A stretch of DNA of 64,000 nt from Lepidodermella squamata (Eukaryota; Animalia; Gastrotricha): positions 4,030,001-4,094,000 of the forward strand of contig JBLDXI010000015.1 of NCBI GenBank assembly GCA_047495785.1, read 5' to 3'. This document shows positions 38,982 through 64,000 of the stretch, piece by piece. The notes under the pieces are model-generated. The model did no database searches. It saw only the letters and a program-made list of their open reading frames with translations, and had not been told where the DNA came from. Each line of letters begins with the position of its first letter. Within the stretch, counting starts at the first letter, position 1. The position numbers and the translations under genes are program-made.

Positions 38982-41803
38982 ATGGCAACAAGTCGACCAA
39001 GTACTGGCAGTCGTCTGAACAGCTCTCGTCCCGAATCTGCCACAAACAATTACGAGAATTTTCTCTGTTTGAAATGTCGTAAATCGTGGAGTTATGAGGA
39101 CATCTTCGAGTCGTCTATTTGCGGCCACGTATTTTGTCGACATTGCGTGACATCTTTCATCCTTGACCGCTACTTTTTGCGCTGTCCAATGTACCCGCGT
39201 TGCCAGGCTGAACTGTCTCGCGAGGAAGTTGCTTTAGTCATGGATGAGAGCGACATTTTGGACTTCTGCACCTCAGATGTTGCTGTCGGCACTGAACAAG
39301 AATGGAAACCGCCGCAGGCTCAAAATGAACATGATAATGAAAGTGTGGATCCCGATGCAACCAAGTGTGGCATTTGCGACGTTGTCAGTTCGAACGACGA
39401 TCTTTCCGAAATTTCTACCGTTTGTGCGCATCGAACAGGCCGCGAATGCGCTGCCGCGGGGCTGAGTCAGGCAGACATGCCGGTAGCAGCTGAAAATACG
39501 CCCGAAAAACCAATTATTAGCACATTTGACTGTTGTCAATGCCGTATTACTATGTCGAAAGAACACGTCTTCAGCATGTCGACCTGTTCCCATGAAATGT
39601 GCCGCGAGTGTGCTGGTTTGTACATCGGAAACAGAATTCGGGTCATGAATTATCCAATTGTGTGCCCAGTCCCAGAATGCTGTAAGACAATGGATCATGA
39701 AGATATATACCTTGTGTTGACTGAAATGCAAACGGTATTATTCAACTTGTATAGATCATATGCTGCTGGCGGCTTTGACCAGGAATGGAAACCACCAGAG
39801 CTTGGCAATAAACAAAGTGCCGATCCCGATGCAACCAAGTGTGACATTTGTGATGTTATTGCCAGTTCGGGCGACGATCTTTTCGAAACTTCTACCGTTT
39901 GTGCGCATCGAATATGCCGCGAATGTGCTGCGACGTGGCTGCGCTTGGCTCCTAATAGCATCTCAAGCATTAGATATTGTCCGATTCCGGACTGTATAAT
40001 CAGATTTGATCAAAGCCGCAAGGAATCCTTGCTCCAATTCGCTGATTTGCTGCTGACGCCGCCTCCGGAAGAATTTTTGTGTGAAATCTGCTTCACGACT
40101 CAATTCATTTTCGACGTCTTCCAGCTTCGCGATTGCCAGCACCAGATTTGTCGCGAATGTGCTCGTGAATACATCCGATCGCTGACTGACGATATGAAGA
40201 AGATGACGTGTCCTATGACCGATTGCAAGGTTCGAAAATATTATTTGAATCGCCAATATTAATAATTAATAAGTTTTTATAGATAATTTACGTTTAATAA
40301 CACCTTAAATTGTATTACCGTATTTTACGAATTATAAGACCCTGCCCTGTATTTTTTTCAAACGAGGTTCAAGTCCTGCCCTGTATTTAGGGTCTGCCCT
40401 TTATTTCGGGTCTGCCCTTTAATTTTTCGAACCTAATCAGTCACCTGAAGAGTACCTAGATTAACAGTTAAAACCGCCGAATAACCACTATAGCTACTGC
40501 CTTCCACCTGTGACTACACGCGTGAAGTGTGTGTTCAAGTGGATTAAGGTGGATAAAGGACGATTAGTGCACTTACTGACGAAAAATCGCAACCTATCAA
40601 ACTTTAACCACTTACCAGCAGGCACCCATGTAAGCCATTTCATACAAGGCCCTGCCTATTAATACGGTTCTGCCCTTTATTATTTCAAATGACCATTACC
40701 CTCTGCCCTTTATTCCGGTTCTGCCCTATAATTGGGTCCTGCCTAATAATTCGTTAAATACGGTATATTTAATGCACCCTTATTTTATAATTTCTGAGAT
40801 CAGCGGGTATTGCTGTCCGGGTCGGCGTCCATCATTTGCGCCATAGAACTTTTGCACCGTGCGACACTCCAAGCTCCATTGGCACCATGCCGACTTGAAC
40901 GAGTGTTGTGCGGCTTCGATTGGCCTATTAGTTTTTGGGTTCAAATTTAGGGTTCCAGAACTAATTTTCTAGATGTTTCTAATTTCTAGTTCTCCTTTGA
41001 ATCTCATTTCTTACCGGGCTTCATCAATGCATCTCACTATTACATTACTATTACGTATATTTTGCGCTATGGCCGGTCAGTTTAGGAGAGGTCATATTTG
41101 ATGCAGTGCCGACATCCCTTGCAATAGGTATTTATTTTTAAAATATCAGTGATTTTTCCGATAGCAGTTCCGAAAGCAGTCTATAGAAAACCAACATTAA
41201 ATTTTCCTATTTGAGTTACGAATGTATCAAGGCCATTGGTTTTATTTTAATTCTATGCGTATTTATTTATTCCCTTTTAGGGAGAACTGACACTTCAAGA
41301 CGCCGAAACTGTGGTCGAAGCTGATGAAATGAAGCGTCTCACTGACATGCTGCTGAAAAAAGCTGTCATCGACTGCTTCCACTGCCCAAAGCCAGACTGC
41401 CGTGGCTTGGCTGAGATGATCCCACCTTGCGTTCGGTTCATCTGCCCCGTTTGTAACTACCACATGTGCACCCGGTGCAATACTGACTGGCATGCGACGG
41501 TCACCTGTGAGGAGTACGCGAGGTGGCGCGAAGAGAACAGAGCTGCTGATCAGCGGTTTACTGACTACGTCCGCGATAAGAAAGTCCAGGTCTGCCCGGC
41601 TTGCAAGCAGGGTGTCGAAAAAACCGAGGGCTGCAACCACATGACATGCCGCTGTGGGGCTCATTTTTGGTGAGTTTCTTTGAATTGTCAAAAATTGCAG
41701 AACTTGGAGATGCCCCTTTAGTTACCTATGCGGCAAAAGGTTCCAGAAACCGGGCTGGGAACCACATGGCTCTTGTCCTTTGTTCCGTTATGACAATATA
41801 TGA
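38982..41803 (+). CDS. Gene C3: poly-RING RBR E3 ligase (4 complete + 1 partial RING1-type fingers, IBR, RING2), intact
   Basis: Exons 38982-40229, 41281-41669, 41722-41803 in frame; GCNH catalytic motif. Confidence 0.88.
40318..40763. mobile_element. Tc2/pogo-like MITE in the C3 intron
   Basis: TIR CCGTATTT(T/A)ACGAATTAT (17/18 match), TA flanks, multiple internal CTGCCCT(G/T)TA repeats. Confidence 0.88.
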
Positions 41804-42531
41804 ACCTATGGAGATAAATCCTAATAATATTACTGACTCGAGCAATTTCAACTGCAATTTTGGCCTTATTAATCTAGCGCTTCCCAATTGCGAATGCATT
41901 TTATGAACAAAACCAGTATTAATGCTTGTCGAATTTTCTTTCATCGCAGATATCTAATAATTTCTGGTGCTTCAGTCCATGGTAAGATACCTAGCATGTG
42001 TGATATGAAAGTAAAAATGTACTGCAATGTGCGCAGTACTTCAACAAGACTCAATCAATCAAAGAACATTTTTATTTTTGCGACCTCATCTAAATATCTA
42101 TTATCCATTTCATCAGTATCCCGGATTATGTTCGAACGGCGAGCTTTAATGAGTATATTTATTTGAAACGATTAATGTTGGTTATTTTTTTATTCTGTGA
42201 TATTGAATTTCACGATTGTTACACGATTGACTCCTATCAACCCTTCGATGTGGTCAGGATAGCAATTTCCGGTTAGTCGCCGGCCTATGAGAGATGGGCG
42301 TTAACCGGCAGACCGGAGTAATATCCCCTCAGATTGATAGTAGCTCAACGACCCAACTGAGCCACCGTGCCACCGTGCCTAGTCTGGCTTGCCTTTATGA
42401 CATTTTTCACAAGCACGAGGTTTTTCTTGAGCAATCAACATTTTGTTATCTTTTTAGCCCATTTACACTGGATTTGGCTTCGGAAGATTTTGTTTATCGA
42501 AAAAAGCCGCTGTAATTATTTCTTTGCTCTA

Positions 42532-42747
42532 CACCAGAAAAAAATCGGACTTTTAGCTTGTGAAATTCCCTCAATTAGGGCCTTGTGAGTATCCTAATTC
42601 ACGGATTTTCAACATTTATCTGAATCCATGCCCAAAACCACCCTAATTCATCTACAAAAATGCAGTTATTTATCTACTGAAAGCATGAATTCAGATACCG
42701 AAATTCATGCTTTCGGTAGATAAATTAGGGTGATATTTTTTCTGGTG
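42532..42747. mobile_element. 216-bp MITE with CACCAGAAAAAA termini
   Basis: CACCAGAAAAAA / TTTTTTCTGGTG with TA on both sides; internal near-palindrome TATCTACTGAAAGCATGAAT..ATTCATGCTTTCGGTAGATA. Confidence 0.8.
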
Positions 42748-42889
42748 TAGTAGCGTAGCAGTGTCATTTGTGAGACGCCAACCCAATTCGAGGGCGCAAG
42801 GGCTTTAAAAGAACAGGAAGCCATTGAAGGAATTGAATAATTGATTGCCAGATTAAGAATGTGTTTGATTTACGTGTTGATTAATAAAT

Positions 42890-43050
42890 ATGTTGGCAAG
42901 ATAGAAAAAGACGTTGGCAATACAAAAAAAGATTTGACAAGATGAAAAAGATTTTTCGTATTTTTAACGCGAGAAAATGCTGGTTAGATGAAAAAAGATG
43001 GAAATTCTCGGTTAGATAGAAAAAGATGTTTGGCAAGATGAAAAAAGATT
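42890..43050. repeat. Degenerate ~20-bp repeats (GGCAAGATGAAAAAAGAT-like)
   Basis: Six or so imperfect copies visible. Confidence 0.6.
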
Positions 43051-44003
43051 AACCCGCTATGACGAGACGAGCTCGTAAAAGTTTCTCTCGATATATACAC
43101 GGCTTAATCGATTTATTTCAAAGCTGATGATCATTTTATAATCCTTTATAGGTACTATGATTTTCGATAAAAGTGGCCGTCTTTATCAGCAAAAGGTCTA
43201 ATTGAAGCTGGTAAAGCTTCATCTTACGCTGGCAATCTTTCATTGATATTGATAACAGGCGCTACTATATACCTGGGCAGATACCAATAACATGTGAAAG
43301 AAATTCACCCTCGCAGCTCCACTGAGGTAATTCAGGTCTCCAACCGTGCGCAAACAGCACTTTATGGGCAATTCTTTGATTCTAGCCCAATGATAATATA
43401 CTTGATGTAATTGATTTAGATTATTTGTGAAAACGTCTGCGTTATTGCAGCCATAAATTGCAGCTGAATTATATCTTGTCCTGACCCCACAGTCCGCTTG
43501 CCAGGAGTGACCATTTATTCAGGAAAATATACAGCGCTTCTGGAAGTACATAGTTCTTTACGCGCCCTGCTGAGTGCTAAGTAAAACAGAAGAAATACCA
43601 GGAAATACCATTAATAAAATATCGGTACATCTTGGCCCGGATAGGTCTGCCGGTAGAGCATGGCACTCTTGTCGGTCAGTTGCTTAGTTATGGGTGCGTG
43701 CGAATGACACTCTATAAACGGTAAAACTGCTACTAAAACAGACACAAAATCTGCTTTATCTGATACTATTATCTGCTATTTTCGTAATTCCTTTTGCAAT
43801 GGGTTCTACTGTACTTTTGTAATGCTAAGCTGTAACTGTTTTTTCATATAGTAAAAAATCGTTCAAATTTTTACAGTGCACGTCAGGAAATACCATTAAT
43901 AAAATATCGCTACATCTTAGCCCGGTTAGGTCTGCCGGTAGAGCATGGCACTCTTGTCGGTCAATTGCTTAGTTATTTTATGTTTAATTCTTATTCAAGA
44001 AGT

Positions 44004-44690
44004 TCAGTAAGTTATCATTTTTGCGATGAAAATAGCCGATGAAGCTGAGATGACTAGAGCACAGAAAGAGAAGCACGCCAAATCGCTGATATTGAGGAAC
44101 TTAATCAAAAACAGTTTCCGCTCCTGTTTGCGACATTTTTTTATCCAATTGTTATAGATGTAGCAGGAAATTGAGGCGTAGACCGTGATGACAGTCGCAA
44201 TACCAAGTTGAATGGTGAAGATGATGGAAATGTAGCTCAACTGAGAGGTTGTTGGCATTCTGTCGTCTATGTTTGTCTGAAGAACCCCCAATGCTAGTTG
44301 ACAGGTTATAGCATAAGCCGACCGGTCCGGGGCACTAGCCGGAATTCCAAAGGTCGCCAATTGGAGAAGCATAAGAAAGGCCATTGGAATTATTGCTATG
44401 TAAATGAACTGGAGCGGGCGTCGTTTTAGGGTGATAATGAAATGGGCTGCGTCGTCAAAAGAACCGCATTGCTGTCTGAGAATCGCCCGACTGTCAGTCA
44501 TATACCACTGCGAGCTTTCTGATGTGAACTCGACTTTCTTCCACGGAATGCCAACTTCAATAGCTAAATAGCCGAATGTGACGTCAAAGCATGAATCCAA
44601 GTGGGCGAATTTGAAAATGCAAGTCTGCTCATCGAAAGGGAACACAGGCGGGATAATGAGAACAAAAAATAGCCTCGAGCAAAGCTCCAT
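44004..44690 (-). pseudogene. LGIC-5: copy of LGIC-4 with most of the extracellular domain deleted in frame (228-aa ORF)
   Basis: MELCSRLFFVLII-PPV-FPFDEQTC junctions; the remainder is nearly identical to LGIC-4. Confidence 0.85.
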
Positions 44691-45741
44691 GCTGAGTTGA
44701 AGTTCGCGACTATTAAAGTTATATTCACACCTCAGATCTTGTTTGCACATTTTCCACATTTTAATTTTGGATAAATAAATCACACGAAGAAGAAAATGCT
44801 TATTTTTCGCTAATTTTTATTTGCATGCGGGTTTATTTTCAGCTTCAGGTTTATTTGCTTTTAACTTTTACGGCGAAAAAACTCAAACGAAGTTCGTTTC
44901 ACCCCAATCATATAGGTGAGCATTTTTTGTGTCCTATTAATGACTGCGCAAAGCTTTATCTGTAATTACTTTTCAATTCATTTTCTCTGGTTCAGCGAAA
45001 ACAGAAAATGAAATGATGACCTAACGAATCCTGAACAAAATTGACAGTGAATTGCGGGTTGCATGGTACCTACGTCAATTCATTTCCCGTCAATTTCTAT
45101 GGATTTCCCGCCAGGATTTTCGTGGAACCGTAAAAGACGGAGAATCGAGGTTACACTGTATGATGTATGAAGCTGCTTGATTTTCAGGGCTTGATTGATT
45201 TTTTTCAAAGCGAGTGACTTTATACCGTAGGGCAGGGTAGTTTTGGACAAACCATATTTTACGAAAATAAAAAGTAAGCCCTAATTTAGAAATCGATGGT
45301 GTTAGGTACAATAGGTACAAGGCGAGCCTGCAAAAACCAATTGTTTGATCTTCATTTTTCTTTCGATAAAACTGAGATAGCCGCGCTCTTAGCCAATTTT
45401 CGTCACAAAATGATTATTTGTTTGTGAGTTAAAAAGGGGATCCCAAATCAGCATTTGAGTTGCCTTGCGTATAAAATTACCCAAAAAATAAGGTATTGCT
45501 CCAATCACCTTTTGGGACTTGTGCCTTTCGTAAGCTCGAGAGGCGGAGAATTGTATACAATAAACTCCGTGCTCTTATCTTACGGCTTTACACAGCTATG
45601 AATCATACCTTGAATATGAATCAGAAGACTGAAATATATAAAATTATTCATTTTAAATCCCAGTTTTTTTTGTTTTCATCGCGGCCGTTACGAAGTATAA
45701 ACACGCATTTTGTCAACATTAGGAATATCTTTTTTACAGTC

Positions 45742-47434
45742 ATGAGCTTCTTTACCGATTATTATCATCATGCTTCGCCTTCTGATTTCGGTGATAGGAC
45801 AACTGGTACCAGAAAGAAGGATTCAACAGTGGATGGTGATGAACGCAAGCATTCTTCAAGCTCGTCAAGCAAACGCTCAACTACGACTGGAGCTTCCTCA
45901 TCTCCTCCTTGGATGGAACGAATTGAAATACCGCGAAGTCAATATAACGTCAACAGCGAATCAGCTTGCACTCTGATGGCTGCTGAGGCCGTTCTGCGAC
46001 TTTTAAGCCCCGATGAATTCTCTGACCATCTAGCCGAGCCCACTATCAAAACTTTGGAAGAAATTCTCGATACGTGTTCAAACGTTGAATGCGACCATCT
46101 TGCTGCTCAAGATCTGTTCGACGGCGGTATTCATCGGTATTCGATGGGGTTGGCATACCACTCGGAAAAGCAAATGCCACTTCAAAATGTCGATAAACTC
46201 GCCAAGCTTGTAACGAAAACGTTGGATAGTGGCCCGTTCGCTCTATTGTTGACTAAACCGCCTGAATCAATTGCTTTGATCGTACAATCGGCGACTGGAT
46301 TCATTTTATTCGACTCGCATCGCCGACCTCATACTTCAGGTGCCTATTTCTTTGTCGCAAACTCTATAGCTTCGATTTTGAGTGAAATTCAATTTATTTG
46401 GCCGGTTACACGTTTTAATGACAGCGTCGGTTCGACTCTGCAACTTGAAATGCTAAATACACTTCAGTATGGGGCGATTACTCGGAAACCAACTCCGCTT
46501 CACCAGCTGCCCCATTTGGATTTATTGCCCATTCGACATACTAGTTAGGAGAGTGAAGTTTCGGATTTGGCGAAGCAGGTCTCAACACTTGTCAAGGAAC
46601 TAGGTGCAGCTGAGGTAAGATGGCTATCAAGATTTGTACTCGTAAATATTGTTCAGGCTTCGTGAAATTTGCGAATATTCCTTTCTCTATTCGCAGGCAT
46701 CCCATCAATTTACCAAAATTAATTTAAATTTAAAATAATTAAACATTAATTATTTTCAATGATTTTCAAAGAATTTAACCATTAAAGCAAATAACTTACC
46801 ACTGTTTTAAATTTAAATCTATCTTGTAAACCGGGGTATCTGGTTCGGTTATATTCGGTATTTTACCAGGTTAGACCGAATGCCTCCGGACCTTTCTTCA
46901 TCCTATCCTTTCGAGGACAGTTGTTGAATCTTTTCAACTGAATCTTGTACTTTTCCCCCATTTCAGTCGCGAATCGTTGAGCTCGAAACAAAAAATGCGA
47001 GCATGGTTTCAGACCTGTCGCGATTCTTCACCAGCCTTCTGCGAGTTCAGGCCGCCTCATCCGCTAACAGTACCGAGGCGATCAACAAACTGGCTCTTGA
47101 ATTCAACCTTCAACTGAACCAAGCAACCGCTGAATCAGCTACTCCGGCAGCTAAAAATACGCCCGAAACACCGATTATTAGCACTTTCGATTGATGCCAA
47201 TGCCGTAAGACTATGTCGAAAGAATACGTCTTCAGCATGTCGACCTGTTCTCACGAAATATGCCGCCCCTGCGCTAGCATTTACATCGGTGACAGAGTTT
47301 GGGACAAGCAGTATCCCATTGCGTGTCCAGTCCCTGAATGCCACAAGATAATGGATCCAGAGGATATCTACCTTGTCTTGGATGGGAAACTAATGGAATC
47401 ATTCGACTCGAACCTACAGCGCTATCGTTATTAA
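45742..47434 (+). pseudogene. Gene B4: DUB domain intact but premature stops at 46546-46548 and 47192-47194
   Basis: TTG>TAG at the start of the coiled coil and TGC>TGA in the first RING Cys; exons 45742-46614 and 46967-47434. Confidence 0.85.
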
Positions 47435-47558
47435 AATGTTTCGATATGATAAATTCGAACGCTGATTCATCGCTTGCTTTGATCTCATCCAATACCCATA
47501 CATTATATATCCAAGAATCAATTGAAAATTACTGTCTTCATCATTTAGGCTTTTATAA

Positions 47559-48670
47559 ATGGCAGCAAGTCGACCAAGTACTGGCAGTCGTCTGAACAAC
47601 CCTTGCGAATCTGCCATAGATTACCATTTCTCTCTCTCTCTCTTTCTCTGTTTGAAATGCCGTGAAATGTCGAGTTTGGAGGATGTCTTCGAGTCGTCCA
47701 ATTGCGGCCATCTATTTTGTCGACGTTGTGTGACATCTTTCATCTTTGACGGCTACCTTTTACGCTGTCCGATGTACCCGCGTTGCCAGGCTGAACTGTC
47801 TCGCGAGGAAGTTGCTCTAGTCATCGACGAGAGCGACATTTTAGACTTCTGTACATCGGACGTAGCTGATGGTTTTGAAGAAGAATGGAAGAAGATGACA
47901 TGTCCTATGACCGATTGCAAGGTTCGGAAATATCTTTTTTTTTATTTTAATCTAAATAATAAAATTTTTAGGAATTTTCGAATTTTATTTTAATCTATAA
48001 AATTTTAATTTTTTAAATGTCAATAGTTAAAAACTGCTGAAAATTAATTTGCACCAAAAGATCGGCGAGATGCTGTGTAAAGATGTGTTGATCTCGTTGA
48101 TCTTAAGCAAAAAAGAATCATTAAAATATCACGCTTTTTTTTATTCTCTGCAAGCCGCGGCGTCCTATAATCATTCTGGCATCAGCAGTCTAGGGTCTAG
48201 GAAGCCACCATTAATCATGACCATTAATTGTTTCTACCTAGCTTATGGTAACCATCATTCATTGCATGAGTTCCAGATAGGAACATACAGCCCTGACAAT
48301 CTCTAGTTATAAAGTGTACAGATAAGAGGAAAATAATAGTCAGTTCAAATCATAGGATTTTTCAGGGGTAGCTATTTTTGCCCTCCAGGCGTTTATGGTA
48401 ACCATAGCAGAATAAAAAATCCCAGGATCAAAATGGAACCGAAGTATCGATCAAGAAGACAGAAAAGCCGAAATCTCAAAGAATCGGAAGACATTATTTT
48501 GAGGGCGCCTAAATTCAAAGCTCGAACCTCAATTTTAATTATGAAAATATGACGGCTCTTTGTTTTATCTGAATTCTTTACTTATTTATTTATTCTTTTC
48601 TAGGGAGAACTGGCGCTTCAAGATGCCGAAACTGTCGCCGAAGCTGATGAAATGAAGCGTCTTACTGACA
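47559..48670 (+). pseudogene. Gene C4: internally deleted, truncated RBR gene
   Basis: First RING fused to the tail of the last RING (EEEW-KKMTCPMTDCK). The IBR exon at 48604 breaks at 48670 into B-C intergenic-type sequence. Confidence 0.85.
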
Positions 48671-49595: not shown

Positions 49596-49744
49596 GAGTA
49601 TCGCGACTTTTTCGCACCTGACCCAGTTTCCTTCCTTTTGCGCGCAGAATGTCTACATTTTATCTGTAATTACACTTTTTCAACGAAAACAGAAAATGAA
49701 ATAAAGATATTATAATGAATCATGCATAACATTTAAAGCAAATG

Positions 49745-50946: not shown

Positions 50947-53139
50947 GGATAGGAGATAGACAGAGAAAATTATAGAATAGCTAGAAATGAGAAAAATCAG
51001 GCCCTTGAACGCTTGAAAATTATTAAGGATCAAACTGAATTTTCTGAATTGGACAAATTACTTGAAAATCCGACTGATTATGATAATATCAAAAAATTCT
51101 GGCTGGAAATAAAAAAATTGAGGGGAGAGAATAGAGAGAAAAGCGAACCCAATCCTCTTGAAAAAGAAGACGGCTCACTTACCAGCGGAATTGACGAAAT
51201 ATTAGAAGTAATGAAAACGTATTTCATTGATCTTTTACAAGGACTTGAAAAGGAACCAATAACCCCGACGATGAAATTCTATTAGATAAAAATCCAAATT
51301 TAACGGAAATTACTCTCACCGAAATTAAAAATGCCATCGACCACATGAAAAACGGTAAAGCCCCGGGTATAGATGAAGTAAGACCCGAAATGATCAAAGC
51401 TCTGAGCGAGGCCAATATTGAATGGCTCAGGGAAATTTTGAATCGAGCTTGGATAGATAAGAGGGTCCCAGAAGAATGGTCAACGGCTATAATTACCCCA
51501 ATTTATAAAAATAAAGGTGAGAAATCAAAATGCCAAAATTACAGAGGCATTAGCCTCTTAAGTGTTGTAGGAAAACTCTATGCCATTATTCTCGAACGAA
51601 AATTGAGAGCATTAATTGGGTCAAAAATTTCTAAACTGCAATTTGGTTTTCAACCCTTCAAGGGCACCAGAGACTGCATTTACGTTCTCCGACAAATTAT
51701 TGAGAAAATTATATTCTTTAAGAAGGAACTCCACCTAGTCTTCATCGATCTCGAAAAAGCCTATGATCTGGTGGACAGGGAAAAAGTATGGGCCGCCCTC
51801 CAAAATATGGGTGTAGAACCCAGCTTAATTGAAGCTATTCAAAGTCTATATAAAGTAAATAAAGTTGCTGTTAGAGTCGATTCTGAGCTCTCCGATTTCT
51901 TCTATGTTACCAGGGGACTAAGACAGGGTTGCCCGTTGTCTCCTTTGCTATTCATAGCGACCTTCAACAAAATTTGCGAAAAAATATCTGCTGAAAAATT
52001 AGGCTTTCCTATTAGCGAAACCGCAAACAGCGAGACCGCTATGAGCGAGACTGATTTCCTAAATTTACTAGCGTTTGCTGACGACGGAACACTTTTAGGC
52101 ATGAACCACGACGAAATTTCACGACTACTTCACATTTTCGATTTGGCTTGCACCGAATTAGGTCTGAAAATTAACGCGGCAAAAACTCAATATATGATTA
52201 TTTCTAGAGACGAGTCAGCCACTCAAAATTACGAATTGGAATTGAACGGGAAAAAACTTGAAAAAGTGACCAAATTTAAATATTTAGGGAGTTTTATTAC
52301 TAGTGACGGCAAAATCGATGAGGAACTAAACTACAGAATTTCTAAGGCAGGCAGTGTTTTCGGCGCCATGAATAAATTCATGTGCAACAAAAGTCAGGTT
52401 TCCATAGCTACAAAACTTAAGGTACTGACATGTGTTATAATACCTACCATCATTTACGCCTGCGAATCGTGGAACATATCGATAGCCCAAGAAAATAGAC
52501 TAAACACTATAGAATATCGATGGCTTCGATCTATAGTAGGTGTCCACCTAATGGACTATATTCCAAATATAGACATTCGACTCGCGTTATGCGGAGGTCT
52601 CATTGAAGTGAGCCGCATTGTTGAAAAACAAAGGCTAAGGTATCTAGGTCACATAATTAGGTCACGTGACTATGACGTAGAAGGACTAATACACAAAATA
52701 TATATTTGGACGCCTCCGCTTGGGTGGTTTGCACCCAGAGGTAGACCTCGAACCAGATGGATCAACGGAGTGCATAGAAGCCTAATTAAAGTAGGTCTTA
52801 CTAAGGAAATTCGCCGGAAAAAGAAAACCAATAAGAAAAATAAGGTCAAGGATAAGAAAAATAAAACCACTAAGAAACGAGAAAATAGAAAAAATCCCGG
52901 CGAAAAGGATTTTGAGATCAAAATTATTCCCGATGTCCAACTAGCGGAATCGGTCTCTTTCGAAAAAGATGAATGGCGCACGGTTGTAAACTCGATTGAA
53001 AATTATGAATTCTATACAAAAAGCAGAATCCTCGACTGTGGGGGTGGGTGAGGTTCATTCTTCGCCTGCTTTCGCCCTCTTCAAAACCGGAAACGGTACA
53101 CGACGCTCAGTCTCGAAGAGGCAAAATAAAACTATTATT
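50947..53139 (+). mobile_element. 5'-truncated RTE-like LINE inserted in the 5' part of gene B5
   Basis: 12-bp TSD ATAGGACAGAAA (50935-50946 and 53140-53151), AATAAA plus TATTATT tail. Confidence 0.92.
51013..53051 (+). pseudogene. RT-encoding ORF of the RTE-like LINE (no endonuclease, frameshift near 51270)
   Basis: KAPGID, NYRGISLLS, FIDLEKAYD, GLRQGCPLSP, FADD, FKYLGS, RLRYLGHI, RGRPRTRW. Confidence 0.9.
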
Positions 53140-53178
53140 ATAGGACAGAAAACTGGTAGTAGAGTGAAGGATTCAACG

Positions 53179-55085
53179 ATGAGTCGTGATGACCGCATGC
53201 ATTCTTCAAGCTCGTTCAGTAATCACTCTATGACTGGTGCTTCCCCACCTAATCCTTGGATTGAACGAGTTCAACTACAACGAAGTCAATACAGCGTTAA
53301 CAGCGAATCGGCTTGCACTTTGATGGCTGCTGAGGCCACTCTACGACTTTTAAGCACTGATGAATTCACTGGCCATCTAGCCCAGCCAACCGTCAACACT
53401 TTGGAAAAGATTCTCGATACGAGTTCAAACGTTAAATGCGACCATCTAGCTGCGCAAGATGTGTTCGACGGCGGCGTTATTCGATATTCGATGGGGTTGG
53501 TATACCACTCGGAAAAGCAAATTCTCCTAAAAGATATCGCTAAACTTGCCAAGGTAGTGACAAAATCGCTGGATAATGGCCCGTTCGGTCTATTAATAAT
53601 AAAACCGCCTGAATCAATTGCTTTGATCGTACAATCCGCGACTCGATTCATTTTATTCGACTCACATGGCCGACCCCATACTTCTGGTGCCTACTTCTCT
53701 GTTGCAAATTCTATTACTTCGATTTTGAGTGAAATTAATTCGATTTGGCCCGTCACACATTGCGATGACAGCAGCGGTTCGTCACTGCAATTTGAGATGC
53801 TGAATACACTTCAGTTTGGGGCTATTACTCGGAAACCAATTCCGATTCGCCAGCTGCCTCATCTGGATCTGTTGCCAGTGCGACATTCTAGTTTGGAGGC
53901 TAAGGTTTCGGATTTGGCGAAGCAGGTCTCAACACTTATGAAGGAACTTGGTGTCGCTCAGGTAACATATTTAATTATTAATTTTTATTTAATCGAGCAT
54001 TGAAAATTGCGAAGTTTTTTGAATTTGCAGCAATTTTCCTTAAAATCCTAAAGGGGCTCATAATTTCAAAAAGCTGAATACTGAGGGCTTAATACGGACG
54101 ACGAGCAAGTTTCACGTAAAAGTAAACGGGGGTGTGACATTTGGGGTTCTTTATACTTGATATACGAGTCGACCGTCTTTCTGAGTATCGCGGCGATCAT
54201 GGTAATATTTTCGATCACGAGTTTGGAACGCAATTGAAAATTATTAGTCATGAGAGGCATGTTTAAGTTTTATTTGCACGCGGTACTATTTTAGGCCTGG
54301 GGGCTTAAATCGGGAAAGGTCTTATTATAACCCTGAGGATTTAGTCCGGATTTTAAGGTATTCAACAGTCAAACCATCCATTTACCTCATTTGAGATTCA
54401 AGAATTTGAAATGTACACAGGAAAAACCTGAGCTGAAACCGATGGTTGTTACTGGGTTTTCAAAGTATCACCCGTTTGGACCAAATTGTTCAGATATTTT
54501 TGTTTTTCAATGAAATCACCTCCCCTTCAATTTCATCGATGCATCCTCGAATTCTGCTACATAATGGAGGTGATATTTTCATTTATCTTACAGCTGCGAA
54601 TCGTTGAGCTTGAAAGCAGGAATGTGAGCATGGTTTCAGAACTGTCACGATTCTTAAACAGCCTTCTGCAAGTTCAGACCGCCTCAGCCGTTAACAATAC
54701 CGAAGCGATCAACAAATTGGCTCACGAATTTAACCTTTCGTTGAACACAGCGAACGCCGCTTCTACTTCAGCCACGCCGACAACAGCTGAAAATATGCCC
54801 GAAAAACCGATTATTAACTATTTCCATTGCTGCCGATGCCGTCAGACTATGTCGAAAGAATACGTCTTCAGCGTGTCGACCTGCTCTCATGAAATGTGCC
54901 GCGAGTGTGCTGGTTTGTACATCGGACATAAAATTGTGGCCATGAGTTATCCAATTGTGTGCCCAGTCCCAGATTGCCACCAGGCAATGAACCCCGAAGA
55001 TATCCGTCTTGTTTTGAATGAAAATCAAACGGCATTATTCAACAGGGATATAGAAGGATATCATCACAGGCAGCATTTTCGTTAG
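53179..55085 (+). CDS. Gene B5: VTD-like deubiquitinase + coiled coil + RING1-type finger; native 5' end disrupted, remaining ORF intact
   Basis: Exons 53179(or 53005)-53961 and 54594-55085; SQY, SAC and FDSH retained. Confidence 0.7.
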
Positions 55086-55225
55086 GGCATGTCGTTTTTG
55101 CCTGCCCTTGCCCTGATAAATTCGAACGATGATTGATCGCTTGCTTTATTAGTATCCGATACCATTGCCTTGAATATCCAAGAAGCAAATGAAAAAATGA
55201 CTTCTCTGAATACCTTAGGCTTTTA

Positions 55226-57586
55226 ATGGCATCAAGTCGACCAAGAACTGGCAGTCTGGACAGCCCTCGTCCCGAATCTGCTACCAAAAATTACCGGCAT
55301 TTTCTCTGTTTGAAATGTCGTAAATTGTCGAGTTATGAGGATGTCTTCGAGTCGTCTGATTGTGGCCACCTATTTTGTCGACATTGCGTGACATCTTTCA
55401 TCCTCGACCGCTACCTTTTGCGCTGTCCAATGTACCCGCGTTGCCAGGCTGAACTGTCTCGCGAGGAAGTTGCTTTAGTCATGGATGAGAGCGACATTTT
55501 GGACTTCTGCACCTCAGATGTTGCTGACGGCATTGAACAAGAATGGAACCCGCAGGAGGCTGAAAAAGAACAAAGTGTCGATCCTGATGCAACCAAGTGT
55601 CGCTTTAGCGACGATCTTTTCCAAATCTCTACCGTTTCTGCGCATCAAATTTGCGCTGCCACGGGCCATAGTGTGGCAGCCATGCCGGCAGCAGCTAAAA
55701 ATAAGCCTGAAAAACATATTATTAGCAGTTTCGATTGCTGCCAATGCCGTAAGACTATGTCGAAAGAATACGTCTTCAGCATGTCGACCTGTTCTCATGA
55801 AATGTGCCGCCCCTGCGCTATCATTTACATCGGTGACAGAGTTTGGGACAAGCAGTATCCAATCGGGTGCCCAGTCCCAGAATGCCGCAAGAAAATGGAT
55901 CCAGAAGACATCTATCTTGTGTTGGATAGAAAACTAATGGAATCATTCAAACCGGATCTACAAGCGATCAACAAATTGGCTCACGAATTTAACCTTTCGT
56001 TGAACACAGCGAACGCCGCTTCTACTTCAGCCACGCCGACAACAGCTGAAAATATGCCCGAAAAACCGATTATTAACTATTTCCATTGCTGCCGATGCCG
56101 TCAGACTATGTCGAAAGAATACGTCTTCAGCGTGTCGACCTGCTCTCATGAAATGTGCCGCGAGTGTGCTGGTTTGTACATCGGACATAAAATTGTGGCC
56201 ATGAGTTATCCAATTGTGTGCCCAGTCCCAGAATGCCACAAGATAATGGATCCTGAAGATATTTACCTTGTGTTGAATGAAAATCAAACGGCATTATTCA
56301 TAGATGGATATCATCAATGGCAGCACCGTCACATTTTTGAACACGGCTCTGAACAAGAATGGAAACCTCAGGAGGATGAAGATGAACAAAGTGTGGATCC
56401 CGATGCATCCAAGTGTGGCATTTGCGACGTTGTCAGTTCGAGCGACGATCTTTTCGAAATTTCTACCGTTTGTGCGCATCGAATATGCCGCGAATGCGCT
56501 GCGACGTGGCTGCGTTTGGCTCCAAACAGCGTCATAAGCATCAAATATTGTCCGATTCTGGATTGTTCAATCACATTTGAGCAAAGTCGGGGGGAATCAT
56601 TGCTCCAATTCGCTGATTTGCTGCCGACTCCACCTCCGGAAGAATTCACGTGTGAAATCTGCTTCACGACTCAGGTCATCTTCGACGTCTTCCAGCTTCG
56701 TGATTGCCAGCACCAGATTTGTCGCGATTGTGCTCGTGAATACATCCGCTCGCTGACTGCCGACATGAAGAAGATGACGTGTCCTATGACCGATTGCAAG
56801 GTTCGAAAATATTATTTTTATATCTTTAATTGTAATTTGTAAAAATAATTAATTATCAGATTTTACAGATAATTTTACGGATCTATATTTTCAGCTTTAC
56901 TGAAATAACACCTTAAATTTTACTCGCAAAATCGCACAGAACCGAAAGAAATTATTTAGAGCGTTGCTAAATTTAGTGCTGGAGCCTCAATTTTAATTAA
57001 GAAAATATTACTGCTCTTGCTTTTATTTTTATGCTTTAATTATTTATTTATTCCCTTTTAGGGAGAACTGACACTTCAAGACGCCGAAACTGTGGTCGAA
57101 GCAGATGAAATGAAGCGCCTTACTGACATGCTGCTGAAAAAAGCTGTCATCGACTGCTTCCATTGCCCAAAGCCGGACTGCCGCGGCCTGGCCGAGATGA
57201 TCCCACCTTGCGTTCGTTTCATCTGCCCCGTTTGTAACTATAACATGTGTACGCAGTGCAACGCTGACTGGCATGCGACGGCCACGTGTGAGGAGTACGC
57301 GAGGTGGCGCGAAGAAAACGGAACTGCCGATCAGCGTTTTACTGAATACGTCCGCGATCGGAAAGTACAGGTTTGCCCGGCTTGCAAGCAGGGTGTCGAG
57401 AAAACCGAGGGCTGCAACCACATGACATGCCGCTGTGGGGCTCATTTTTGGTCAGTTACTTATTGAATTGTCAACAATCACACAACTTGAAAATGTCCTT
57501 TTAGTTACTTATGTGGCAAGCGGTTCCAGATAGCTAATTGGGAACCACATGGCTCTTGTCCTTTGTTCCGTTATGATAATATATGA
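55226..57586 (+). CDS. Gene C5: poly-RING RBR E3 ligase (5 complete RING1-type fingers + remnant, IBR, RING2), intact
   Basis: Exons 55226-56800, 57062-57450, 57505-57586 in frame. Confidence 0.88.
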
Positions 57587-58029
57587 CATGGTGATTCGAT
57601 AAATCCTGATAATGTCGCGGACTCGATCAGTTTCAACTGCAATTTCTGCCTTATTAATCTAGGCTTCCCAAATGGTGTCGAATGCAATACTTGTAATATG
57701 AAAAAACCAGTATTATGCTTTACTGTGGACGAATTTTCTTTCGTCACAGACACCTAATAGTCTCTAGTCTCTGGTGCTTCAATCTATGGTGAGAGATACC
57801 TAGTATATGTGATATGAAAGTAAAATTGTACGTCATGGCGCGCGGTGCTCCAGCGAGACTTTATTCTTCAAACGAATTTTTATTTTTGCGACCTCATCTA
57901 AATATGCTTGTCACCATTACGATCAAATGGAGAGCTTTATTGAGTAAATTGAAACGATTATACTGTTAGGTTCATTTTTTTATTCTGCGAGTATCGCGAC
58001 TTTTTCGCACCTGACCCAGTTTCCTTCCT

Positions 58030-59480: not shown

Positions 59481-59868
59481 GTCCCGAGTCCCCAAAACGT
59501 CATCTTGCCGTCACCATGTTGTTTTCATCTGATGTTTTTCAGACCGTTTTTCACTATAATGGCGTGAAGATGATGTTTAGGGAACCCGAATAACAATTGT
59601 GGCGAACGGGCGCTCAACCCGTCTTGATGACGTGAAAATAAATTACGAGTATAAACATGCATCTAAGAAGCAATGTAGCGCTTCAAGCATTTATCGCCCA
59701 CACACAATTGTTGACAAAACTGCTATTTATAACTTGAAAATCCCAAGGATGACTGGAACATGAAGCAGATGACTAAAATAAAAACAATGATTCATATTTC
59801 ATACCAGTTTGATTTCGCTATCATCGCAGCAGTTGCGACACGAAGGAATACGTTAATTTTATTCACTA

Positions 59869-61603
59869 ATGAGTTTCCCGACCGAATATAGTTTTCACCC
59901 TTTGCCTTCTGATTCTGAGGACTGGACAACTGCTACTAGAAAGAAGAGCTCAAGGATAAATAGTGATGAACGCCAGTATTCTTCAAGCTCGTCAAGCAAG
60001 CGCTCAACGGCTATAGCTTCGTCATCTAATTATTGGATTGAACGAATTGATATACAACGAAGTCAATATAACGTCAACAGCGAATCAGCTTGCACTCTGA
60101 TGGCTGCTGAGGCTATTCTACGACTCTTAAGCACCGATTAATTCTCTGACCATCTAGTCCAGCCAACCAGCGAGACTTTGGAAGAAATTCTTGATACATG
60201 TTCAGACGTTAAATGCGACCACCTAGCTGCTCAAGATCTGTTCGACGGAAGTATTTCTCGATATTCGATGGGGTTGGAATACCACTCGGAAAAGCAAATG
60301 CCCCTTCAAGATATCGATAATCTTGCGAAGTTAGTAAATAACTTGCTGGATAGTGGCCCGTTCGCTCTATTGTTGACCAAACCGCCTGAATCAATTGCTT
60401 TGATCGTACAATCGGCGACTCAATTCATTTTATTCGACTCGCATCGCCGACATCATACTTCAGGTGCTTATTTCGCTATTGCCAATACTATCACGTTGAT
60501 TTTGAATGAAATACAACTGATTTGGCCGGTTACGCATTTCGATGACGGCTTCGGCTCGCAAATTGAAATGCTGAATACTCTCCAGTATGGAGTGATTTCT
60601 AGGAAAGCAATTCCTCTTCCCCAGCTGCACTATGATGTGTTGCCCATGCGACATTCTAGTTTGGAGGCTAAATTTTCGGATTTGGCGAAGCAGGTCTCAA
60701 CACTTACAAAGGAACTTGGTGCCGCTCAGGTAAGATGACCTTCGAGAATTTTTTAATAGATATTAAAATTCAGCGTGTTTTACGAAATATGCGAATATTT
60801 CCTTGAGTTTTCAACTGTTTTCATGCTGCCTGATAATTGCCCTCAATATAATTATAAATTTATATAAAATTATTTAAAATTAATATTCGCTATAACCGGA
60901 GAGTCGATGGGATCTGGTTCGATTATTATCGGAATTTTACCCGGTTTGACCGAATTTTTTTCCAATATCTTATTTTCCGTCTAGTGATAGCCTTTCTTTT
61001 AATCACACCGAAAATTGTAGACTTATGATAGAAACTCTATTACTCTGTGGATCTTTTATACAAGATTTCAATCATCAGCAGCTGACGAGGACGGTCAAGG
61101 AATCTTCCAAGCTGAATCTTGTGCTTTTAATCTTTTCAGTCGCAAATTGCTGAGCTTGAAAGCAAAAACGCGAGCATGGTTGCTGACCTGACGCGATTTT
61201 TCAACAGCTTTCTGCGAGTTCAGGCCGCCTCATCCGCTAACAATGCCGAGGCGATCAAGAAACTGGCTGTTGAATTCAACCTTCAACTGAACCCAGCTGC
61301 TTCCACATCAGCTACTCCGGCTGCTAAAAATGCGCCCGAAAAAACCTAATTATTAGCACTTTCGATTGCTGCAAATGCCGTAAGACTATTTCGAACGTCT
61401 TCAGCATGTCGACCTGTTCTCACCAAATGTGCCGCCCATGCGCTAGCATTTACATCGGTGACAGAATTTGAGACAAGAAGTATCCAATCGTGTGCCCAGT
61501 CCCAGAATGCCGCAAGAAAATGGATCCGGAAGATATCTATCTTGTGTTGGATGAAAAGCAAATGACATCATTCAAACCGGATCTACAGCGCTATCGTTTA
61601 TAA
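59869..61603 (+). pseudogene. Gene B6: DUB-coiled coil-RING pseudogene
   Basis: GAA>TAA at 60139-60141; exon 2 (from 61140) has indels near 61345 and 61390. Confidence 0.88.
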
Positions 61604-61726
61604 AATTTGTTGATATCTGATTCGAACGATTGATCCATTGCTTCAATAATATTCAATACCAATAACTTATATCCGAAAATGAATTCAAAGAATGACTTTT
61701 TCTCTGCATCAACTTTAGGCTTTTAA

Positions 61727-62478
61727 ATGGCAGCAAGTCGACCAATTACTGGCAGTCGTCTGAACAACCCTCGCGAATCTGCCAGAAATTACCATTTCTC
61801 TCTCTCTCTCTCTTTCTCTGTTTGAAATGCCGTGAAATGTCGAGTTTGGAGGATGTCTTCGAGTCGTCTAATTGCGGCCATCTATTTTGTCGACGTTGCG
61901 TGACATCTTTCATCCTTGACCGCTACCTTTTACGCTGTCCGATGTACCCCCGTTGCCAGGCTGAACTGTCTCGCGAGGAAGCTGCTTTAGTCCTCGACGA
62001 GAGCGACGTTTTGGACTTCTGTACCTCGGACGTAGCTGGTGGTTTTGAAGAAGAATCGAAGCCATCTGTTGCTGGAACAACCGACTGCTTCAATTGCCCG
62101 AAGCCAGACTGCCGCGGCCTGGCTGAGATGGTGCCACCTTGCGTTCTTTTCATCTGCCCAGTTTGTAACTACCACATGTGTACCCGATGCAATACTGACT
62201 GGCATGCGACGGTTACCTGCGAAGAGTACGCGAGGTGGCGCGAAGAAAACGGAAGAAAACCGATTATTAGCACTTTCGATTGCTGCCAATGCCGCAAGAT
62301 TATGCCTAAAGAACACGTCTTCAGCATGTCGACCTGTTCTCATGAAATGTGCCACTCGTGCGCTGGCTTGTACTTCCGCAAACAAATCAGGGACAAGCAG
62401 TATCCCATTACGTCCCCACTCCCCGAATTCCACCAGATAATAGATCCAGAAGATACCTCTATCTTGTGTTTGGATTGA
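61727..62478 (+). pseudogene. Gene C6a: chimeric RING-IBR-RING(B-type) fragment, out of frame with its ATG
   Basis: ATG 61727 is out of frame with ORF 61822-62478 across a (CT)8 tract. Domain order is first RING, IBR, gene-B-type RING, with no RING2. Confidence 0.8.
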
Positions 62479-62636
62479 AATCAGATGAAAACATTCAGCC
62501 AGGATCGTTTTTAAATTTCTCGACTTGACAAGTTCGAATGATTGATCGCTTGTTTTAGTAATATCTAATTACCCATTTCTTAATATCCCAGAAATGACAA
62601 CTATGACCAAACTCTCTGCATCATTTAGGCTTTTAA

Positions 62637-64000
62637 ATGGCAACAAGTCGACCAAGCAATGCGGCAATCTGTTTTTTTTCGGCGTTGCGCGACACCTTTC
62701 ATCTTTGACGGCTATCTGTTACGCTCTCCCATGTACCCGCATTGCCAGGCTGAACTGCATCGCGAGGAAACGGCTAGAGTCATAAACGAAAGCGATATTT
62801 TGGACTTCTGCACCTTGGACGCAGCATTGAAACCGTCACAGGCTGACAATAAACGAAGCGTCGATCCCAAAACATCCAAGTGTGGCATGTGCTATGTTGT
62901 TAGTTCGGGCGACGATCTTTTCGAACTTTCTACCGTTTGTTCGCATCATATTTGTCGCGAATGTGCTACGAAGTGGCTGACAGGTGCTCCAAGCAGATTC
63001 TCAGCAAGCATTAGATATTGTCCGATTCCGGACTGTATAATCAGATTTGAGCAAAGTCGGAGGGAACCCTTGTTCCAATTCGCTGACTTGCTGCCTTCTC
63101 CGCCTCCGGAAGAATTTCCGTGTGAGATCTGCTTCACGACCCAAGTCATTTTCGAAGTCTTCAAACTTCGCGATTGCCAGCACCAGATTTGTCGCGAATG
63201 TGCTCGCGAATACATCCGCTCGCTGACTGCCGACATGAAGAATATGACGTGCCCTATGGTCGGATGCATGGTACGTAAGTATTATTTCTAAATCGCTGAT
63301 AATTTATATTAATAATTAATTAATAAATCAATCAAATTGTTATCGATAATTTCTGAGTATTATCATTTCAATATTGATTTTACAAATCAGTGATTGTTCC
63401 GATATTAGCAGTCTAGGAAGCCTGCGTTGAACGTTGCCACCTAGCTGAAAACTATAGCAGAATCACAGGGTAAACGGGGAACCAGTCAAGAATACATAAG
63501 CAAAGAATCAGAAAAACTTAGCATGAGCACGCCTAAATTTAGAGTTAGAACGTCAATTTTAGTTGTGAAAACGTTACGGCCCTTAGTTTTTTTAATGCTT
63601 CGCTTGTTTAATTCTACTTTTTAGGGAGAACTGACACTTGAAGATGCCGAAACTGTCATCGAAGCAGATGAAATGAAGCGCCTTACTGACATGCTGCTGA
63701 AAAAAGCTGTCATCGACTGCTTCCATTGCCCGAAGCCAGACTGCCCCGGCCTGGCCGAGATGATCCCACCTTGCGTTCGATTCATCTGCCCAGTTTGTAA
63801 CTATAACATGTGTACGCAGTGCAACGCTGACTGGCATGCGACGGTCACCTGCGAAGAGTACGCGAGGTGGCGCGAAGAAAACGGAGCCGCTGATCAGCGG
63901 TTTACTGACTACGTCCGCGATAAGAAAGTCCAGGTCTGCCCGGCTTGCAAGCAGGGTGTCGAAAAAACCGAGGGCTGCAACCACATGACATGCCGCTGTG
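62637..64000 (+). pseudogene. Gene C6b: RBR gene with damaged first RING; 3' end runs off the window
   Basis: Native ATG 62637 is out of frame. ORF 62659-63270 splices to 63624 (IBR, RING2 GCNH); it could still be translated from 62659. Confidence 0.7.

Follow-up and report, generated by a model that had tools for sequence, protein, structure and literature searches.

A tandem array of gene pairs for a predicted VTD-type deubiquitinase and an RBR ligase with multiplied RING1-type modules

The window, the whole 64-kb stretch of DNA analysed here, carries six tandem cassettes (C1-C6) on its plus strand. Every cassette comprises two genes: gene A, in which a VTD domain and a coiled coil precede a RING termed B, is followed by gene B, an RBR ligase. 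The number of RING1-type modules before the IBR domain, canonically one, is three in C2, four in C3 and five in C5. It is fairly probable that the region is a birth-and-death tandem array of this two-gene cassette, whose variants arose through a few junctions and gene conversion.

A predicted deubiquitinase next to an RBR ligase

In gene A, a VTD-type deubiquitinase domain, a coiled coil and the B RING, an RBR-style RING1, follow one another. The VTD profile matches PDB 8adb (E=1.8e-7); an AlphaFold2 model of the domain (pLDDT 84, pTM 0.86) retrieves 8adc (E=1.5e-10, TM 0.66), 2j7q (E=1e-6) and 8add (E=1e-5) in Foldseek, and its papain-like fold resembles M48, DrT1-VTD and Wc-VTD. A catalytic Cys and an Asp-x-His motif are defining VTD features (PMC9741609). 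Both are present in C1-C5, as SESAC and FDSH motifs aligned with Wc-VTD1; parts of them are absent from gene 0, which lies in the same window, and from L002. Judged by sequence and modelled fold, the gene A product is a predicted VTD-type deubiquitinase. The gene A exons of C3 to C6 are:

34184..35050 (+), C3 exon 1: Ser-rich N-terminus and VTD, Cys and Asp-x-His present; donor CAG/GTAAGA
38374..38847 (+), C3 exon 2, after a 3.3-kb intron: coiled coil, linker, B RING (38605-38754), TAA
45742..46548 (+), C4 exon 1: VTD intact, in-frame TAG before the coiled coil
46967..47434 (+), C4 exon 2: first Cys of RING B replaced by a stop
53179..53961 (+), C5 exon 1: VTD
54594..55085 (+), C5 exon 2: coiled coil, linker, "internal"-type B RING, TAG
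59869..60738 (+), C6 exon 1: VTD broken by an in-frame stop
61140..61600 (+), C6 exon 2: frameshift inside the B region

A LINE reverse-transcriptase ORF adjoins the 5' end of C5 gene A exon 1; animal-type genes in the window comprise Cys-loop receptors and LINEs. No part of the window looks like human DNA, and genes for toxins, effectors or animal viruses play no role.

In gene B, a single exon encodes RINGs a, b and c, and IBR plus RING2 are spread over another two; splice sites of the gene models are conserved (GT..AG), and the last intron is 52 nt long. Modules were mapped by tblastn of module queries against the window and by a zinc-ligand pattern scan; the tblastn matches are not due to chance, since their E-values run from 1e-20 to 1e-57. 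Modules a, b, c and B are all RBR-style RING1 domains of the C3HC4 type that end in C-P-x3-4-C (24-module alignment), with eight zinc ligands confirmed by the pattern scan, the alignment and Pfam (zf-C3HC4, zf-RING_2). The hydrophobic C-x-I-C position is kept in b and c only, not in a or B. The IBR is matched by Pfam (E=2e-14), and the position of the RING2 catalytic Cys (GCNHM, aligned on ARIH1 Cys357) does not vary between any of the copies; exon 3 encodes the final Cys pair of RING2. The nearest solved structures are RNF216 and ARIH1. Because their architecture is not that of a single RING1, the genes are a variant of the RBR family.

Multi-RING copies and their neighbors

The module orders that a sequence-only reading had proposed for C2, C3, C4, C5 and C6a were all reproduced by tblastn and the zinc-ligand scan. 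The same reading placed in-frame junctions inside the exons of C3 and C5, and this is confirmed: all exon 1 modules lie within single ORFs of 426 (C3) and 538 (C5) codons. Gene B of C3 consists of the following parts:

38982..40229 (+), exon 1: a, degenerate b', internal B, b, c; ATG conserved, donor TGCAAG/GT
39054-39287, 39339-39473 and 39489-39743 (+; tblastn): a, partial b and B
39813-40052 and 40056-40235 (+; tblastn): b and c
39273..39467 (+), X copy 1: a-b linker and 5' part of b (b')
39472..39747 (+): internal B RING, derived from the last exon of gene A
39756..40052 (+), X copy 2: a-tail/a-b linker and complete RING b
41281..41669 (+), exon 2: IBR and most of RING2, including the catalytic Cys; ends in phase 2, TTTTG/GTGAGT
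41722..41803 (+), exon 3, preceded by an intron of 52 nt: final Cys pair of RING2, tail, stop

Gene B of C5 adds a second internal B and has five intact RINGs:

55226..56800 (+), exon 1: a, b' remnant, B (in1), linker plus B (in2), b, c
55298-55525, 55571-55654 and 55694-55924 (+; tblastn): a, b remnant and B in1
56045-56299, 56387-56623 and 56627-56806 (+; tblastn): B in2, b and c
57062..57450 (+), exon 2: IBR-RING2
57505..57586 (+), exon 3: end of RING2, tail, stop

The partial b copies of C3 and C5 lack some zinc ligands; in C3, b' has lost one and its second half is absent. For C3 exon 1, AlphaFold2 gave a model (pLDDT 52.6, pTM 0.26) too poor to show how the modules pack. In the remaining cassettes, gene B is either plain or damaged:

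5478..6184 (+), C1 exon 1: 7-nt deletion after RING a causes a frameshift, leaving b and c in another frame
22193..22930 (+), C2 exon 1: plain a-b-c form
22217-22444, 22529-22675 and 22757-22933 (+; tblastn): C2 a, b and c
23378-23766 (+): C2 exon 2
23821-23914 (+): C2 exon 3 (C3-like); a second, C1-like last exon begins at 23932
47559..47921 (+), C4 remnant: in-frame fusion of RING a with the final 11 codons of c
48604..48670 (+), C4 IBR exon: first ~67 nt left, remainder deleted
61727..62478 (+), C6a: ATG, frameshift in a CT-rich run, then a, 18-nt filler, IBR piece, B, stop
61825-62037, 62082-62253 and 62256-62466 (+): C6a a, IBR piece and B, in a single ORF
62659..63270 (+), C6b exon 1: RING a 5'-deleted, b and c intact
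63625..64000 (+), C6b exon 2: IBR-RING2, cut off by the window end

C4 and C6a arose by deletion and carry lesions that disable them. The C6a B RING lacks its last two Cys, and the usual gene A-to-gene B spacer comes next.

Junctions, proposed collapse and gene conversion

How did a B RING reach the interior of an RBR exon? The sequence-only reading had taken B for a module of the RBR gene; instead, it is the RING of the neighboring deubiquitinase gene, and every cassette carries an upstream B in that separate gene. Because B belongs to gene A, the internal B of C3 and C5 derives from the last exon of a neighboring gene. In C3, junction J1 (~39465-39472) joins b' to B, and J2 (~39747-39756) connects the B tail to an a-tail/linker, so that a copy of the linker plus 5' b stands on either side of the insert, the two being 77% identical. 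J1 lies at the identical position in C5 (~55655-55690), where J2 falls at ~56325-56344; the shared b'-to-B junction therefore points to one ancestral event. C5 has a further junction, J3 (55962), with AGCG microhomology: here a B tail breaks off three codons short of the gene A stop and the gene A linker begins; the tract 55962..56325 (+) is 93.6% identical to exon 2 of C5's own gene A (54703-55075). The C4 junction (47888-47890) has a 3-nt microhomology, and the junctions overall show 3-6 nt of microhomology or short filler. Homologous RING-to-RING crossover was rejected as their source, microhomology or filler being seen instead.

C6 still has the stop, the spacer and a truncated a downstream of its internal B; this intermediate state suggests that adjacent cassettes collapsed by deletion. 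One deletion would have run from the middle of b in one gene B into the last exon of the gene A that follows; through a second, the stop of that exon would have been lost along with the spacer and RING a. The outcome, a-b'-B-b-c, would have passed to both C3 and C5, and C5 would later have acquired an extra linker-plus-B copy of the gene A exon. C6 would be frozen at the intermediate stage; C4 and C6a are dead deletion products.

Per-module identities, the B tree and the per-module trees are mutually discordant. The conflict among identities implies that gene conversion acts too, homogenizing IBR-RING2. Exons 2-3 of C2, for example, are 86.8% identical to C3 versus 77.9% to C1; in the B tree, in2 sits with the upstream B of C5 itself, and in1 clusters with upstream-type B RINGs from other cassettes. 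The per-module trees, a comparison already suggested by the earlier reading, disagree between modules, revealing mosaicism; its claim of rearrangement among paralogs holds. "Combinatorial", the word chosen for this, is overstated: rearranged orders exist, but the intact variants are two and share one b'-to-B junction. The variant architectures are shown to be products of a few microhomology or filler junctions between cassette parts and of gene conversion among copies.

Selection, decay and possible roles

IBR-RING2 is the most conserved part (dN/dS 0.07-0.10 among C3, C5 and C6). Its conservation, claimed earlier, stands as the lowest dN/dS but is partly owed to swap or conversion between copies. 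Constraint is weak in b (0.38-0.67) and internal B (0.53), values that come from small counts (~40-50 synonymous sites); dN/dS is below 1 for every module. Does selection, then, favor the variety itself? It might diversify RING number and order for a putative recognition surface while the catalytic end stays constant, as in fast-evolving E3 adaptor families. Intact copies do differ in RING number (3 to 5), IBR-RING2 evolves more slowly than b and internal B, pseudogenes and birth-and-death turnover mark the array, and 6/6 independent junctions are in frame ((1/3)^6, ~0.001, if frame were random). However, dN/dS exceeds 1 in no module, the intact variants number two and have a common origin, the remaining rearranged copies are broken, and IBR-RING2 uniformity comes partly from conversion; adaptive diversification is a tentative candidate, on balance unlikely. 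What survives of the earlier claim of diversification is that the multi-RING exons look selected; the values below 1 and the broken C4 and C6a do not fit it.

Might every rearranged copy, even C3 and C5, be a non-functional by-product of instability in the tandem array? C1, C4 and C6a and gene A of C4 and C6 are demonstrably broken, and the b' pieces are degenerate and predicted to be disordered (AlphaFold2, for that of C3). Yet the exons of C3 (1248 nt) and C5 (1575 nt) have stayed open despite a non-coding divergence between the two of ~0.25 per site and many indels in the flanking DNA; under neutrality, an open exon would survive in <=0.5% (C3) and <=0.15% (C5) of simulations at 0.10 substitutions per site per lineage with indels left out. 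Zinc ligands are intact in C3 (32/32) and C5 (40/40), as are splice sites and downstream exons, and dN/dS below 1 also speaks against decay, which is improbable. The multi-RING exons of C3 and C5 look selected, and both are probably real three-exon genes; from their sequences, we infer that both encode functional E3 ligases, in which four (C3) and five (C5) RING1 modules are intact. Conversion from intact neighbors could keep an unused module open and lower dN/dS.

What might the extra RINGs do? General RING knowledge suggests that c, beside the IBR, may be the working E2-docking RING1, and that the N-terminal RINGs could be beads on a string, extra docking or partner-binding modules; possibly, they pair with the RING of the VTD partner. 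It is doubtful that the genes form a lineage-specific RBR class in which RING1 number is evolvable, cassettes swap RINGs and four- and five-RING enzymes engage E2, partner or substrate in altered ways; if true, the cassette would be a writer-eraser pair with coupling tuned by RING dosage.

One gene or two?

A spacer of ~130-145 nt separates the gene A stop from the gene B start. The last exon of gene A closes with a stop codon in 6/6 copies, at varying codons; TTTAG/G in the spacer is conserved upstream of the gene B ATG, itself conserved and, in C1 and C3, preceded shortly by an in-frame stop. With a spacing of 128-140 nt and this TTTAG/G, the two genes might form an operon-like or trans-spliced pair. 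Could A and B nonetheless be exons of one VTD-coiled coil-B-a-b-c-IBR-RING2 gene, with B in the same protein? Relatives (P0011/L001) carry VTD, coiled coil and RBR fused in one ORF, gene 0 has this layout in two ORFs, and the spacer is short (~130-145 nt). An intron joining A to B was rejected, however, because no donor site is conserved and the ATG is preceded by stops; in addition, the spacer is the least conserved part (58-84% identity), with indels that are not multiples of three. A single gene is quite improbable. For gene 0, a 51-nt intron linking the two ORFs was likewise rejected: the reading frame would not match across it, which makes a frameshift the likelier explanation. An Rfam scan of the window found no spliced leader or other RNA family, and a tRNA scan found no matches. 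C3 exon 1, the VTD ORF and a Cys-loop receptor ORF, used as queries in word-index protein searches, returned zero matches; close relatives are absent from that database.

It is scarcely credible that assembly created the junctions by mis-joining similar repeats: the array is repetitive, and C5 has two 373-nt tracts, 93.6% identical and ~1.26 kb apart, but these differ at ~24 positions, J1 and J2 occur in two copies with 5-24% divergence per module, and the copies are divergent enough to assemble.

Comparison with known ligases

RBR ligases are defined by a single RING1 that passes E2-bound ubiquitin to RING2. The genes described here share with canonical RBRs (ARIH1/HHARI, RNF216, HOIL-1, parkin) the C3HC4 RING1 ending in C-P-x-C and an IBR followed by a RING2 with the GCNHM catalytic cysteine; they differ in placing three to five RING1-type modules before a single IBR-RING2, in lacking the accessory domains of the named human families and in standing in a tandem array. 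Three, four and five RING1 modules on the same catalytic core would make a natural experiment on extra E2-type docking modules, each RBR gene being paired with a deubiquitinase that bears the same kind of RING, and the locus, with an intermediate preserved, illustrates in-frame domain gain via collapse of neighboring tandem genes. If the extra modules are unexpressed or inert, it is merely an unstable gene array.

VTD-RBR fusion proteins occur in Agaricomycetes and protists (Erven et al., 2022; PMC9741609), and the environmental relative P0011 has this fused form. The link between a VTD-type deubiquitinase and an RBR ligase is the same here, and the VTD is closest to the Waddlia Wc-VTD1 structure, with Cys and Asp-x-His kept. 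Unlike in the fusions, the two are split into adjacent genes, the VTD gene retains its own RING1, the RBR gene has multiplied RING1, and the host has animal-type genes. P0007, P0010 and L032 likewise duplicate RBR modules within one protein, but repeat whole RING1-IBR(-RING2) units, with no RING1 run before a single IBR. Several RING1 before a single IBR were absent from all relatives retrieved, and no precedent for multi-RING1 RBRs emerged from a literature search. A metagenome scan with the window's own IBR-RING2 alignment gave no loci; a broader alignment gave 80 distant loci, none with a multi-RING1 array, which is weak evidence of absence because the RING profile recognized RING1 in only 18/83 loci.

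Lineage-specific tandem expansions of ubiquitin ligases are familiar from TRIM clusters and the nematode F-box and MATH-BTB families. The array resembles these in its tandem arrangement, pseudogenes and gene conversion, and in a conserved catalytic or scaffold end opposite a variable one. Positive selection is documented in those families for the variable part, a known substrate-binding domain, whereas here that part is an E2-binding-type domain in which positive selection was not detected. The layout is unusual for the RBR enzyme class, yet it stems from ordinary gene-family rearrangement.

Cassette Organization and RING Modules

The RING order of each cassette was mapped by tblastn with module queries taken from cassette C3. 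All modules named in the sequence-only reading were recovered (E-values 1e-20 to 1e-57), and an eight-zinc-ligand scan of the window finds 24 intact RING modules. Aligned, types a, b and c of gene B (the RBR E3 ligase) and type B are all RBR-style RING1s (C3HC4 ending in C-P-x3-4-C). The orders first read from the DNA are confirmed: a-b-c in C2; a-b'-B-b-c in C3, in one 426-codon ORF, where b' is a degenerate partial b; a-b'-B-B-b-c in C5, in one 538-codon ORF; a joined to the c tail in C4; and a, an IBR piece and then B in C6a, the upstream rearranged piece of C6.

Features of the window, which has eukaryotic-type GT..AG introns of about 50 nt to 3 kb
3993-4631, 20578-21168, 34349-34981, 45907-46545, 53254-53892, 60034-60660, + strand: VTD domains of the six tandem cassettes C1 to C6 (+ strand)
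38848-38981, 47435-47558, 55086-55225, 61600-61726, 62479-62658, + strand: spacers between genes A and B
1889-3351: gene 0, a divergent seventh cassette (partial decayed copy at 18432-19320)
24132-32434, - strand: three intron-less Cys-loop receptor paralogues
8989-14137: LINE (gag-like ORF, endonuclease, reverse transcriptase)
15881-17366: Crypton-like element (DUF3504 and tyrosine recombinase pair)
51013-53051: second LINE-type reverse-transcriptase ORF, inserted directly at the 5' end of C5 gene A

Where does the B RING come from? A two-exon gene A sits upstream of each a-b-c exon: the cassette is a gene pair. Exon 1 of gene A has no Pfam match; a profile of its copies matches the Waddlia Wc-VTD1 structure 8adb (E=1.8e-7) in an alignment that pairs the catalytic Cys and the Asp-x-His motif, and its AlphaFold2 model (pLDDT 84, pTM 0.86) matches 8adc (E=1.5e-10, TM 0.66), followed by cytomegalovirus M48 protease, Helitron VTD and AvrPphB. 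Profile and model identify exon 1 as a predicted viral-tegument-like deubiquitinase (VTD) with catalytic Cys and Asp-x-His present, a family described together with its Asp-x-His signature in PMC9741609. Exon 2 supplies the B RING, preceded by a coiled coil and a linker, and is stop-terminated in 6/6 copies; thus, the B-type RING is the RING of the neighbouring deubiquitinase gene. The C3 gene A intron (35051-38373) spans 3.3 kb, vs about 170-630 nt in other copies, and contains inverted repeats resembling TIRs, with 42-nt arms at 35445-35486 and 36237-36278, which are probably small elements that inserted there.

Gene B comprises three exons, which encode the RING array, the IBR with most of RING2, and the last cysteine pair with the tail; the last intron is roughly 50 nt. 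The GCNHM cysteine, invariant across copies, aligns with the ARIH1 catalytic Cys357, and C2, C3 and C5 are shown, at the sequence level, to encode complete predicted RBR catalytic cores. The gene B ATG is conserved, about 128-145 nt past the gene A stop, with an in-frame stop directly upstream in C1 and C3. A conserved TTTAG|GCTTTT adjoins this ATG on its 5' side; spacing and motif would fit an operon-like pair or a trans-splice acceptor, either being possible, and no spliced-leader RNA family was found within the window.

In gene 0, the VTD-like domain is divergent and has no Asp-x-His; it is combined with a coiled coil and a RING1-IBR-RING2 on a single exon. Near 2521-2578 both frames are open where the two ORFs of this gene overlap, which looks like a 1-nt frameshift. 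Two paralogous small ORFs of 131 and 124 aa (26392-26787 and 26940-27314, both - strand) contain a Cys-rich membrane-like stretch and have no family match.

Integrity and Selection

Gene B is intact in C2, C3 and C5. Elsewhere, C1 gene B has a 7-nt deletion after RING a; C4 gene B consists of a plus the c tail, with the IBR exon mostly deleted, and C4 gene A carries two nonsense codons; C6 gene A has one stop and one frameshift; C6a is frameshifted after the ATG and its B lacks two ligands; and C6b, the downstream gene B of C6, misses the first half of RING a, with b, c and the downstream exon retained. Zinc ligands are missing from the b' pieces, which AlphaFold2 predicts to be disordered. 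Given the lesions in C4 and C6a, only C3 and C5 among the rearranged forms are candidates for function; these two are probably functional.

Are the long exons merely open by chance? C3 and C5 have diverged by about 0.25 substitutions per site in their non-coding DNA, where indels are also numerous. When substitution is simulated neutrally at 0.10-0.15 per site per lineage, an open frame survives in 0.55% to 0.05% of runs for the C3 exon and in 0.15% to 0% for the C5 exon. Since dN/dS is also below 1 in every module, the multi-RING exons appear to be maintained as coding sequence. Among C3, C5 and C6, dN/dS is 0.07-0.10 for IBR-RING2, 0.14-0.23 for c, 0.18-0.69 for a and 0.38-0.67 for b; it is 0.53 for the internal B of C3 vs the second internal B of C5, a pattern that indicates weaker constraint on the added modules. 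Antisense ORFs of ~130-140 aa lie opposite every IBR-RING2 exon (6677-7078, 41263-41691, 57044-57445, 63592-63984, all - strand); their recurrence reflects conservation of the exon, and nothing marks them as genes.

Junctions and Exchange Among Cassettes

C3 and C5 have their b'-to-B junction at an identical nucleotide position, save for a 9-nt deletion in C5, and so share one ancestral event. At the next junction, the B exon tail runs into the last part of module a and the a-b linker; thus, the C3 B insert (39472-39747) is flanked by two 77%-identical copies of the linker and 5' b. At a third, in C5 (55962), a B tail, three codons short of the gene A stop, runs via AGCG microhomology into the middle of a gene A exon 2 linker; beyond it, a 373-nt stretch matches exon 2 of the same cassette's gene A at 93.6% identity. 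Microhomology at the C4 junction amounts to 3 nt, and C6a shows an 18-nt filler and GAAAAC-type microhomology. C6 retains the gene A stop after its internal B, then a normal spacer, a truncated a and b-c. Independent junctions are in frame in 6/6 cases (chance about 0.001 by simple arithmetic, subject to ascertainment).

If a deletion fused one gene B with the final exon of the gene A that follows, the C6 arrangement would result; a second deletion, removing stop, spacer and a, would produce exactly that of C3. In C5, an extra copy of a gene A exon segment would have been added after cassette collapse. On junction anatomy and the C6 state, the favoured origin is therefore microhomology-mediated deletion that collapsed adjacent cassettes.

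Per-module identities among cassettes conflict. Identity between C3 and C5 is 95% in a, but drops to 84% in VTD and 77% in the upstream B. C3 and C4 come closest in VTD (90%), since this domain lies within a segmental duplication (30947-35077 / 43426-46641; 77-97% identical) that copied one Cys-loop receptor, truncated at 44004-44783, together with the VTD exon. C2 is 80-94% identical to C1 in VTD, B, a, b and c, but in exons 2-3 it matches C3 (86.8%) better than C1 (77.9%), and its 3' end (23372-24304) has two alternative last exons, C3-like from 23821 and C1-like from 23932. By sequence, exons 2-3 and the doubled last exon of C2 are the apparent footprint of a swapped 3' cassette. In the B tree, the upstream B of C5 groups with its second internal B and the internal B of C3, and the first internal B of C5 with the upstream B of C3, C4 and C6. 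Per-module trees split the subfamilies deeply for VTD, B, a and b (branch lengths 0.27-0.52); the split is absent for IBR-RING2. These conflicts imply frequent gene conversion or exchange, helping to keep IBR-RING2 uniform. The proposal that recombination diversifies the RINGs while IBR-RING2 stays conserved is partly supported: the rearranged architectures are real and IBR-RING2 has the lowest dN/dS, but its uniformity owes something to gene conversion and several variants are dead.

What Might the Extra RINGs Do?

Module c adjoins the IBR, as the c type does in the nearest relatives, the environmental protein P0001 and locus L002, and is the putative working E2 dock. Classical RINGs such as c-Cbl and BRCA1 hold E2 through the hydrophobic residue of C-x-I-C. 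This residue is kept in b and c and is missing from a (C-L-K-C) and B (C-C-Q-C and variants), which are more likely partner-binding or regulatory beads. With the same B RING present in the deubiquitinase gene, the modules may link eraser to writer; coupling would act in trans in C2 and, more speculatively, partly in cis where gene B has taken in a B of its own.

Comparison With Known Systems

The nearest structure to the cassette VTD is Waddlia Wc-VTD1, and VTD-RBR fusions have been reported in mushrooms and protists (PMC9741609). Word-index protein searches with C3 gene B exon 1, the VTD ORF and a Cys-loop receptor ORF return no close relative; in an exhaustive search with the IBR-RING2 exon (4922 proteins), the best relatives are only about 50% identical and all environmental. 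Several RING1s before one IBR occur in 0 of 156 fetched proteins and 83 loci, the RING profile having picked out a RING1 in 18 of those loci, and a search of the literature turned up no multi-RING1 RBR. The relatives show other kinds of module duplication: P0007 contains the RBR twice, P0010 many units, and L032 (4810-6489) RING1-IBR-RING1-IBR-RING2 in one ORF, which adjoins deacetylase-like and DNA-ligase-like genes. P0011 fuses VTD, coiled coil and RBR in a single ORF. L002, a 4-kb contig, aligns an a-type RING ORF, a probably inactive VTD ORF, with Cys and His replaced, and a c-type RBR ORF in a row (424-2603); the same parts are therefore found elsewhere in other orders. The multi-RING genes belong to a known enzyme family as a new architectural variant, made by ordinary tandem-array dynamics.
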